From Macrostomum lignano (taxonomy: Eukaryota): a stretch of 64,000 nucleotides of DNA. The notes below the pieces were generated by a model. The model did not search any database and was not told the origin of the DNA. It saw only the letters and a list, made by a program, of their open reading frames with translations. A program made the translations under genes and the position numbers. Each line of letters opens with the position of its first letter. The stretch's first letter is position 1. The stretch is from positions 182,627 through 246,626 of the forward strand of contig NIVC01002295.1 in the NCBI GenBank assembly GCA_002269645.1, written 5' to 3'. Shown here in pieces: positions 50,641 through 51,689 of the stretch.

Positions 50641-50765
50641 CCTTCGTAGAAAATGTTGGACGGCAAGGCGGACAGGGCCGGGTGCATGCGGTATTGCACC
50701 TGAAAGCGGGGTAAGTGGATATGGGGACTGTGAGAGTTTCCATACTCGGAAGTGTACCCTAGACT
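50641..50765 (-). pseudogene. Inverted unspliced UPF1 gene fragment (intron 3 end plus start of exon 4)
   Basis: The reverse complement matches 5926-6058 with one substitution (TTG vs TTC) and one 8-nt indel (AGTTCCGA). It encodes [20 protein letters not shown] after the intact acceptor. Confidence 0.93.
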
Positions 50766-51689
50766 GTTAAATTGGTCCTATTGGAAAAAACGTTTAAAAT
50801 AATGACAAGACCAATTTAACATGAAAAATCGATTAATGCGTCGTCAGAGCAGCATGTGAGGCACAAAATAGTGTGATTAAGGACTTCTATGACACTGTTA
50901 AGAGACCCAATCACTGTTTTAGTGTTGAAAATCGTGAAATTTCCTATCTTCGTAGTGTATTTTTCCGTTGAAACCTGCCTAACTGCCTTTAAAACTATTT
51001 CTGAATGAAAAGCTTTATGAATATCGATTGAGAAATAAGAAAGGCACAACATATCAAAAGATGAACACTGGATCGGCCTCCTATCAAAAGCAATGACAAT
51101 TTTTGTGCTGAAAAAATTAAACCTCCTATCTCTGTAGTGTATTTTTCGGCAAAAAATTGCCTTCAAAACATTTACCATAGATTTCGAGTTTTGAGTCCTT
51201 CTACTTTAGTTGTCCTTGTGCCACTCCATGACTCTCGTACAGGATCGCCCTAGCTGAGGGATTAAGGCCCCCGGAGAGAACTGGGGTGATCTAACATTAT
51301 TGTATGCCGCATATAAAGCTAGTTGCCATATGGGCGTAGGCTCGAGTCCCCGGGCTGACAGGCGGACCCTCCACCCTGGCCAGAGTTGTACCCCCCCCCC
51401 CCGGATCGACTCGCGTGTGAGCGAATCATTGAGAGCTTTGCCTGCACTCGAATCCAGTTTCTTTTCCAAGCTCGCAAAAGTCCCTCAAAATTTATTGGGA
51501 GAGGAGGGGGCGGCTTCGCTTTGGCTTAAGAGAACTTTCCGGCTCTATGCGGATTTCAGTAAGCTCGTTTTGGTGCACAAATTGTAGAGGGGCAGGGACA
51601 GAGACAGACGGAATGCAAGGTAAATCCAAGTTAATTAGGGATAGAATGCGTGATAGGGATTCGATTGCGATTGAAGAGTAGAGAAACTG

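Follow-up and report, generated by a model that had tools for sequence, protein, structure and literature searches.

An inverted, unspliced piece of the UPF1 gene, 125 nt long, lies 44.6 kb away from its donor on the same molecule (in cis) and directly adjoins a perfect 13-bp hairpin. The sequence analyzed is the terminal 64 kb of Macrostomum lignano contig NIVC01002295.1 (182,627–246,626, same orientation), referred to here as the window and numbered from its first letter. The reading we favor, with a rough probability of 0.55, is that copy and hairpin together are a complex templated insertion, left behind as a neutral scar when a double-strand break in the M. lignano germline was repaired in an error-prone manner. 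The copy itself appears to be a discrete, recent and non-coding piece of UPF1, single-copy in the accessible sequence and without demonstrated function. The features on which this account draws are the following.

1396–8547, plus strand: UPF1 (regulator of nonsense transcripts 1), spliced model with six coding exons
1396–1911, 2278–2976, 5184–5855, 6000–6227, 6834–7291 and 7881–8547, plus strand: exons of UPF1
5926–6058, plus strand: donor segment, composed of the last 74 nt of intron 3 (5926–5999, acceptor AG at 5998–5999) and the first 59 nt of exon 4 (6000–6058)
37290–37751, minus strand: single-exon EF-hand gene
49570–50260 and 51764–52029: minisatellite arrays near the copy
50641–50765, minus strand: inverted copy of the donor segment, 125 nt, delimited by alignment (exon-4 part 50641–50699, intron part 50700–50765)

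The EF-hand gene at 37290–37751 agrees with this contig in every residue. The contig belongs to the Mlig_3_7 assembly (NIVC01, GCA_002269645.1) of M. lignano line DV1, which is based on PacBio, Illumina and 454 data and Canu, comprises 764 Mb, consists of tandem repeats to 15%, and contains large duplicated blocks because DV1 is a recent polyploid (PMC5730564). Minisatellites make up about 39% of the window, in line with a tandem-repeat-rich, polyploid genome. When tandem repeats were masked, two dispersed repeats were left in the window, namely the UPF1 copy and a pair of inverted EF-hand genes. The second EF-hand gene carries a probable homopolymer error, 4 kb from the copy. A tRNA-like sequence at 48110–48179 is the sole Rfam match, and ARAGORN found no tRNA.

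Searches for further copies covered approximately 125 kb of M. lignano sequence, i.e., the window and about 61 kb from three loci, L002 to L004, of about 20 kb each. L002 (NIVC01000921.1) is a homeolog with approximately 94% identity to the window, and its comparison reaches window position 48.9 kb. L003 (NIVC01003195.1) is the nearest duplicate contig, 98.9% identical, with a comparison that reaches position 48.45 kb. Both homeologs were reached via the EF-hand gene, and their comparison ends 1.7–2.2 kb before the copy site, to which no called gene is nearer.

The UPF1 gene itself is intact. Its spliced model encodes 1079 amino acids without stops, with GT-AG at every intron. The helicase core has Mytilus UPF1 as its top named protein match (79% identical), and the region of exons 3 to 5 matches the human UPF1 structures 2XZO and 2GJK with E = 6.5e-65. 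The exon at 1396–1911 lacks an ATG. The 35-nt spliced leader of M. lignano terminates in one (PMC8629364), and the acceptor of the exon is in frame with it. UPF1 is presumably trans-spliced, with 1396–1911 as exon 1, and the numbering "intron 3 / exon 4" is valid if this is indeed the first exon. Intron 3 then spans 5856–5999 (144 nt), and exon 4 begins at 6000. In a search for UPF1 homeologs, the species-specific C-terminus gave no match, and for three versions of the spliced model no exact protein record was found. Likewise, the open reading frame at 11764–13125 beside UPF1 has no record in the protein collection.

The relationship between copy and donor is nearly perfect. By alignment, the reverse complement of 50641–50765 equals 5926–6058 with two differences, a C/G substitution and an 8-nt indel, so that all coordinates of the original prediction proved correct. 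In terms of aligned bases, 124 of 125 are identical, in addition to one deletion of the slippage type; BLAST reports 111 nt at 99.1% identity (E = 1e-52). Three exact blocks make up the copy: 50641–50663 corresponds to 6058–6036, 50665–50751 to 6034–5948, and 50746–50765 to 5945–5926. The copy has kept 66 nt of intron 3 (74 nt in the donor, before the deletion), the acceptor and 59 nt of exon 4, a division that agrees with the six-exon model, as does the intron 3 / exon 4 label assigned from the letters alone. That the piece is not a processed retrocopy, as had also been proposed, is borne out by the retained 66 nt of intron and acceptor; neither an A-run nor a target-site duplication is present at the ends of the copy.

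The exon part consists of conserved coding sequence, which identifies UPF1 as the source and the piece at 50641–50765 as the product. The substitution, at 50664 in the copy and 6035 in the parent, turns the parental codon TTC (Phe) into TTG (Leu). The parental Phe belongs to the motif SAFPSN, and the codon is conserved with human UPF1. The indel lies between 6-nt direct repeats, with the parent reading TTCCGA-AG-TTCCGA-G and the copy TTCCGA-G; within the repeat, the deletion is placed at 50746–50752 of the copy. A single deletion converts the parent into the copy exactly, while no exact tandem duplication converts the copy into the parent. Polarized by parsimony in this way, TTCCGAAGTTCCGAG would be the ancestral state at the indel, and both differences are derived in the copy. 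Possibly both were made during the copying itself.

With one substitution in 125 nt, the event is recent. The copy is about as old as, or younger than, the 1.1% divergence from L003, and far younger than the approximately 6% divergence from L002. The only open reading frame on its minus strand has 31 amino acids, with a stop 11 codons beyond the end of homology. The copy is probably without effect on UPF1.

Homology ends sharply on both sides. The flanks of the copy score 9 and 10 against the flanks of the donor segment, with shuffle means of 10.1 and 9.5. An old inverted duplication that was maintained by gene conversion, as in the EF-hand pair, was considered as well and rejected, because the flanks retain no residual similarity. 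Homology at the junctions amounts to 0 nt at 50640/50641 and to 1 nt at 50765 (A at 5926); 6 of the next 10 nt are alike, which we treat as chance. The 1.5 kb of unique sequence around the site (50261–51760) has no second copy in the window or in the three other M. lignano loci, and there is no further exact match of at least 12 nt between 50500–51000 and the rest of the window. Rfam has no match at the copy site. Among the neighboring open reading frames no Pfam match was found, which includes transposase and RepHel domains. The three reading frames at the junction, 50618–50770 (plus strand), 50588–50743 (minus strand) and 50816–51178 (minus strand), are absent from the protein collection, as are ten ATG-started reading frames between 50.6 and 58.2 kb.

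The copy coincides with a step in base composition. The sequence on its left has a GC content of 45–57%, that of the block of about 450 nt on its right 33–37%. The elements that surround the right end of the copy are these.

50552–50571: left arm of a candidate terminal inverted repeat (18/20 match), paired with 51219–51238
50765–50777: left hairpin arm, TGTTAAATTGGTC, adjoining the copy with a 1-nt overlap; proposed new foldback copy of the right arm
50778–50808: hairpin loop, 31 nt, AT-rich like the right flank
50809–50821: right hairpin arm, GACCAATTTAACA; proposed native sequence of the right flank and template of the foldback
50766–51218: AT-rich block (33–37% GC) to the right of the copy, unique in the window and the fetched loci
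51219–51238: right arm of the candidate terminal inverted repeat, bordering the AT-rich block on its right

The arms 50765–50777 and 50809–50821 form a perfect 13-bp inverted repeat around the 31-nt loop. Base 50765 is shared by the start of the left arm and the end of the copy. This hairpin abutting the copy had been pointed out before, together with a CTAG that follows it after 2 nt on the minus strand (plus-strand 50759–50762), and both observations were confirmed. Non-trivial perfect inverted repeats of at least 13 bp with a loop of at most 60 nt occur twice in the window, whereas random sequence of the Markov-1 type would be expected to contain 0.04; the hairpin is thus not a product of chance. 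Folded as DNA it reaches −10 kcal/mol (z = −4.0). In composition, loop and right arm resemble the AT-rich block on the right. Judged by position and base composition, the left arm is likely the new one.

From these elements a sequence of events can be proposed. A break would have occurred at about 50640/50778. The right-hand end, a 3' end of the bottom strand, would have folded back by means of a few complementary bases and copied its own strand over up to 13 nt, generating the left arm from the right arm and leaving the 31-nt loop. Having dissociated, the same end would have re-primed on UPF1 in cis at a distance of 45 kb, guided by no more than 1 nt of homology (A at 5926). Copying would have begun in the middle part of intron 3 and run on into exon 4, over approximately 133 nt. 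On the way, one slip between the two TTCCGA repeats would account for the loss of 8 nt, and one base may have been misincorporated. Finally, a step resembling end joining, with no microhomology involved, would have connected the extended end to the left side of the break at 50640. We infer both that the piece was inserted and that its two flanks were once contiguous; the break, the order of steps and the identity of the new arm likewise belong to the model.

Several properties of the site speak for this model. The order of left flank, distant copy, new arm, loop, template arm and right flank is what one would expect if a single 3' end had been extended twice. The hairpin, highly non-random and located exactly at the junction, counts for a repair scar, and so do the sharp ends, the single-copy state in the accessible sequence, the cis donor, and the junction homology of 0–1 nt. 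The loss of 8 nt between direct repeats of 6 nt is consistent with slippage of a repair polymerase. The M. lignano germline is moreover known to integrate injected DNA via non-homologous recombination (PMC5730564), which we also count in favor. Other properties count against it. The step in composition might just as well be where an inserted element ends or where a larger rearrangement has its breakpoint, and the borderline 18/20 inverted repeat brackets the region. A priming homology of 1 nt is less than usual for synthesis of the polymerase-theta type. Furthermore, the hairpin could predate the event.

The original prediction had left open whether a mobile element or break repair carried the fragment. 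Break repair fits the anatomy best, and the mobile element is not supported, a second copy of the flanks being absent from the window and the three loci. A transposable element might have captured the copy or might house it, either as a non-autonomous DNA element of about 690 bp (50552–51238) with 20-bp terminal inverted repeats, or with the copy as filler at the edge of an AT-rich element (50766–51218) that ends in the 13-bp hairpin, a Helitron being one version. Such an element would suit a repeat-rich genome, the sharp step in composition, and the AT-rich block, which holds two diverged repeats about 182 nt apart (50908–50965 and 51091–51147). It could also explain the 18/20 inverted repeat that brackets copy and block; the score of this repeat, 30 (z about 3.8), stands against a mean of 20.6 (sd 2.5) in 200 shuffles, the best of which likewise reached 30, and is therefore borderline. 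Neither candidate is flanked by a target-site duplication: around the 18/20 repeat the flanks read ...ccgtta on the left and acagga... on the right, without a duplication of 2–10 nt, and around the hairpin cctagac and tgaaaaa. The lack of a second flank copy in the window and in L002 to L004 and the neighboring reading frames, which lack transposase, RepHel and other Pfam domains, also speak against an element, and the tested Helitron features fail. A Helitron 3' end carries a G+C-rich subterminal hairpin of about 16–20 nt with a short loop, some 10–12 nt upstream of CTRR. The hairpin observed here has a 13-bp stem with 4 of 13 bases G/C, a 31-nt loop, and 2 nt to the CTAG. This CTAG lies inside UPF1-derived sequence; it was inherited from the intron, where the donor has it at 5929–5932, and is hence no terminus of an element. 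No 5' TC end was identified. Helitrons insert between a host A and T; here the minus strand continues after CTAG with G (C at 50758 on the plus strand). The earlier hint at a hairpin-CTRR terminus is therefore not supported by the features tested. A literature search on Helitrons in M. lignano yielded nothing useful. Capture by an element does not predict a donor just 45 kb off in cis either. For a random insertion into the 764-Mb assembly, landing this near the donor has a probability of about 1e-4, and the cis donor at 44.6 kb argues for a proximity-dependent DNA transaction and against movement mediated by a transposon or an mRNA. Altogether, we consider a transposable element unlikely. The inverted cis donor also fits template switching of the FoSTeS/MMBIR type, in which a stalled or broken fork would have moved to UPF1 and back, so that copy and hairpin would mark the junction of a possibly larger rearrangement rather than a plain insertion into a two-ended break. 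Minisatellites are abundant in this region, with arrays at 49570–50260 and 51764–52029, and arrays of this kind are obstacles to forks; a step in composition at the junction would fit a breakpoint. However, homology at the junctions is 0–1 nt, compared with 2–5 nt or more as is typical for this process, and the window reveals neither a change in copy number nor a second breakpoint. The combination of a short foldback and a distant piece is, furthermore, documented for end joining (PMC11724301). Template switching of this type thus appears doubtful to us.

Repair templated by RNA is a further variant. Here nascent UPF1 pre-mRNA, still unspliced and located at its gene 45 kb away, would have served as template for the top-strand 3' end at 50640, which a reverse-transcribing polymerase would have extended from exon 4 into intron 3, while the right end would have formed its foldback independently. 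The copy is unspliced and stems from a transcribed gene, and the strand logic works, as the plus strand, read from 50641 to 50765, has antisense polarity relative to the pre-mRNA and follows it from its 3' to its 5' side; slippage and substitution would suit an enzyme of low fidelity. RNA and DNA templates are indistinguishable by sequence, yet the junctions are devoid of retroelement sequence, and this route has to extend both break ends separately, which is less parsimonious than a double extension of one end on DNA. We rate it as quite improbable. Still less credit is due to an artefact of reads or assembly in the PacBio/Canu-based Mlig_3_7. The assembly is difficult, redundant and repeat-rich, and the probable homopolymer error in the second EF-hand gene is a case of imperfect sequence nearby. 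Nevertheless, a mis-join would bring in long foreign sequence, not 125 nt between unique flanks without an N gap, and two breakpoints 125 bp apart would be needed. Chimeras from missed adapters invert adjacent sequence, not sequence 45 kb away, and the copy has a substitution and a deletion of its own. An assembly chimera is accordingly unlikely, and an artefact of any kind very improbable.

A regulatory role had been suggested for the fragment in terms of antisense transcription across the UPF1 splice site. Owing to the inversion, a plus-strand transcript through the copy would be complementary to the UPF1 sequence at the 3' splice site of intron 3, could base-pair there, and might give rise to small RNAs directed at the central NMD factor of a neopolyploid. 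That the junction reading frames are missing from the protein collection is weak evidence against an abundant transcript. None of the results supports either a scar of RNA-templated repair fixed in an animal germline or a source of antisense or small RNAs, and we give such readings a low probability. Most likely, the copy has no function.

The kind of event is ordinary, as templated insertion scars and gene-fragment duplications are already known. If the repair-scar reading is true, the site is a clean natural case of a two-step templated insertion, foldback plus a piece of a nearby locus, fixed in the germline. What is known of such events so far comes mostly from yeast, flies and cancer cells in which breaks had been induced. 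M. lignano is known for its radiation tolerance. The repair-scar reading would also imply that no transposon is needed to disperse exon-intron fragments of essential genes. For annotators it would mean that the copy should be recorded neither as a pseudogene nor as a Helitron capture, and should not be put down to faulty assembly.

Compared with known systems, the site shares with gene capture by Helitrons and Pack-MULEs that a piece of a host gene, including intron, is found at a second locus beside an inverted repeat. It differs in that termini, target-site duplication, RepHel, transposase and multiple copies are all missing in the accessible sequence, and from Helitrons in particular by the wrong geometry of the hairpin. 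With FoSTeS/MMBIR it has in common a short, templated and inverted segment from a nearby cis region and a junction in a repeat-dense region, while hardly any microhomology at the junction and no change in copy number are visible. Filler DNA and templated sequence insertions are known in plant, insect and human genomes. As in these, where the orientation can be either and inserts measure tens to hundreds of bases, the site would have gained sequence copied from a different genomic or transcribed locus without the hallmarks of transposons. Human templated sequence insertions are often thought to be derived from RNA and to come from distant loci; here, in contrast, the intron is kept and the donor is nearby.

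Related precedents for the foldback step are the "snap-back" described for synthesis-dependent MMEJ in Drosophila (PMC2943611) and the extension of stem-loops by polymerase theta (PMC11292364). The closest parallels are found among yeast breaks, where foldback inversions are mostly shorter than 14 bp and arise via a hairpin with a 41-nt loop, junction microhomology is 0–5 bp, and complex insertions join a local foldback to distant templated pieces (PMC11724301). The M. lignano site resembles these Break-Ins in its inverted copy of 13 bp beside the break, in its long loop (31 nt), in its junction homology of 0–1 nt, here relative to a pre-insertion target that we infer, and in a second piece with a template elsewhere; as in yeast, the inserted sequence is non-coding and occurs as a single copy. 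It differs from the yeast events (PMC11724301) as a natural incident in a flatworm germline, where the break is deduced from sequence and was not induced, and in the origin of its distant piece, which was taken from only 45 kb away in cis.

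Tandem repeat makes up approximately 39% of the whole 64-kb window, and three introns of UPF1 consist mostly of minisatellite. Separate sites in the window furthermore share minisatellite families, one with a 10-nt unit and one with an 83-nt unit, the two arrays of the latter lying 4 kb apart. The arrays are as follows.

2017-2253, minisatellite in a UPF1 intron, 32-nt unit, 7 copies
2973-5063, minisatellite in a UPF1 intron, 44-nt unit, 48 copies
6323-6774, minisatellite in a UPF1 intron, 34-nt unit, 13 copies
22381-23042 and 27291-27882, arrays of the 83-nt unit
41094-41926 and 49570-50260, arrays of the 10-nt unit GGAGAGACGG, 87% alike
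53323-55806, 2.5-kb array of the 15-nt unit CGCGCAAGATACAAG, 166 copies, 93% matches

Several reading frames remain open through the array of the 15-nt unit and give rise to ORFs of 830-880 aa, which are spurious. Another minisatellite, with a 12-nt unit (48179-48946), directly adjoins a tRNA-like sequence. With 29.3 bits, the latter only just reaches the Rfam gathering score of 29, and ARAGORN did not call it; possibly it represents a decayed tRNA gene or the head of a SINE.

48110-48179, minus strand, tRNA-like sequence

Two EF-hand (calmodulin-like) genes form an inverted pair separated by 8.5 kb.

37290-37751, minus strand, first EF-hand gene
46195-46670, plus strand, second EF-hand gene

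Their central part of approximately 330 nt is nearly identical between both genes in all three homeologous contigs, i.e., the one studied here, L002 (NIVC01000921.1) and L003 (NIVC01003195.1), whereas their 3' ends share only some 81% identity. This pattern suggests either gene conversion or strong constraint. The second gene has lost one nucleotide from a run of C (about 46548) solely in the contig studied here, and is intact in L002 and L003. The loss probably reflects a homopolymer error of the PacBio assembly; otherwise, the gene would be a very recent pseudogene.

The extreme end of contig NIVC01002295.1 is occupied by a broken retroelement, which is probably the reason why the contig stops at this point.

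61500-63900, broken LTR-retrotransposon pol; ORF fragments resembling integrase are present, and positions 62786-63013 encode an RT_RNaseH domain (PF17917, E = 5e-21)

Within UPF1 itself, intron 3 (5856-5999) comprises 144 nt, contains no stop codons and keeps the frame, such that an ORF at 5124-6278 continues across it uninterrupted. Retention of this intron would add 48 residues within the helicase core without a premature stop. The first coding exon of the gene (1396-1911) has no ATG, and its acceptor (cccag/GCG) lies in the same reading frame as the terminal ATG of the 35-nt spliced leader of M. lignano (PMC8629364). On these sequence grounds, UPF1 is probably trans-spliced, with its start codon supplied by the spliced leader.
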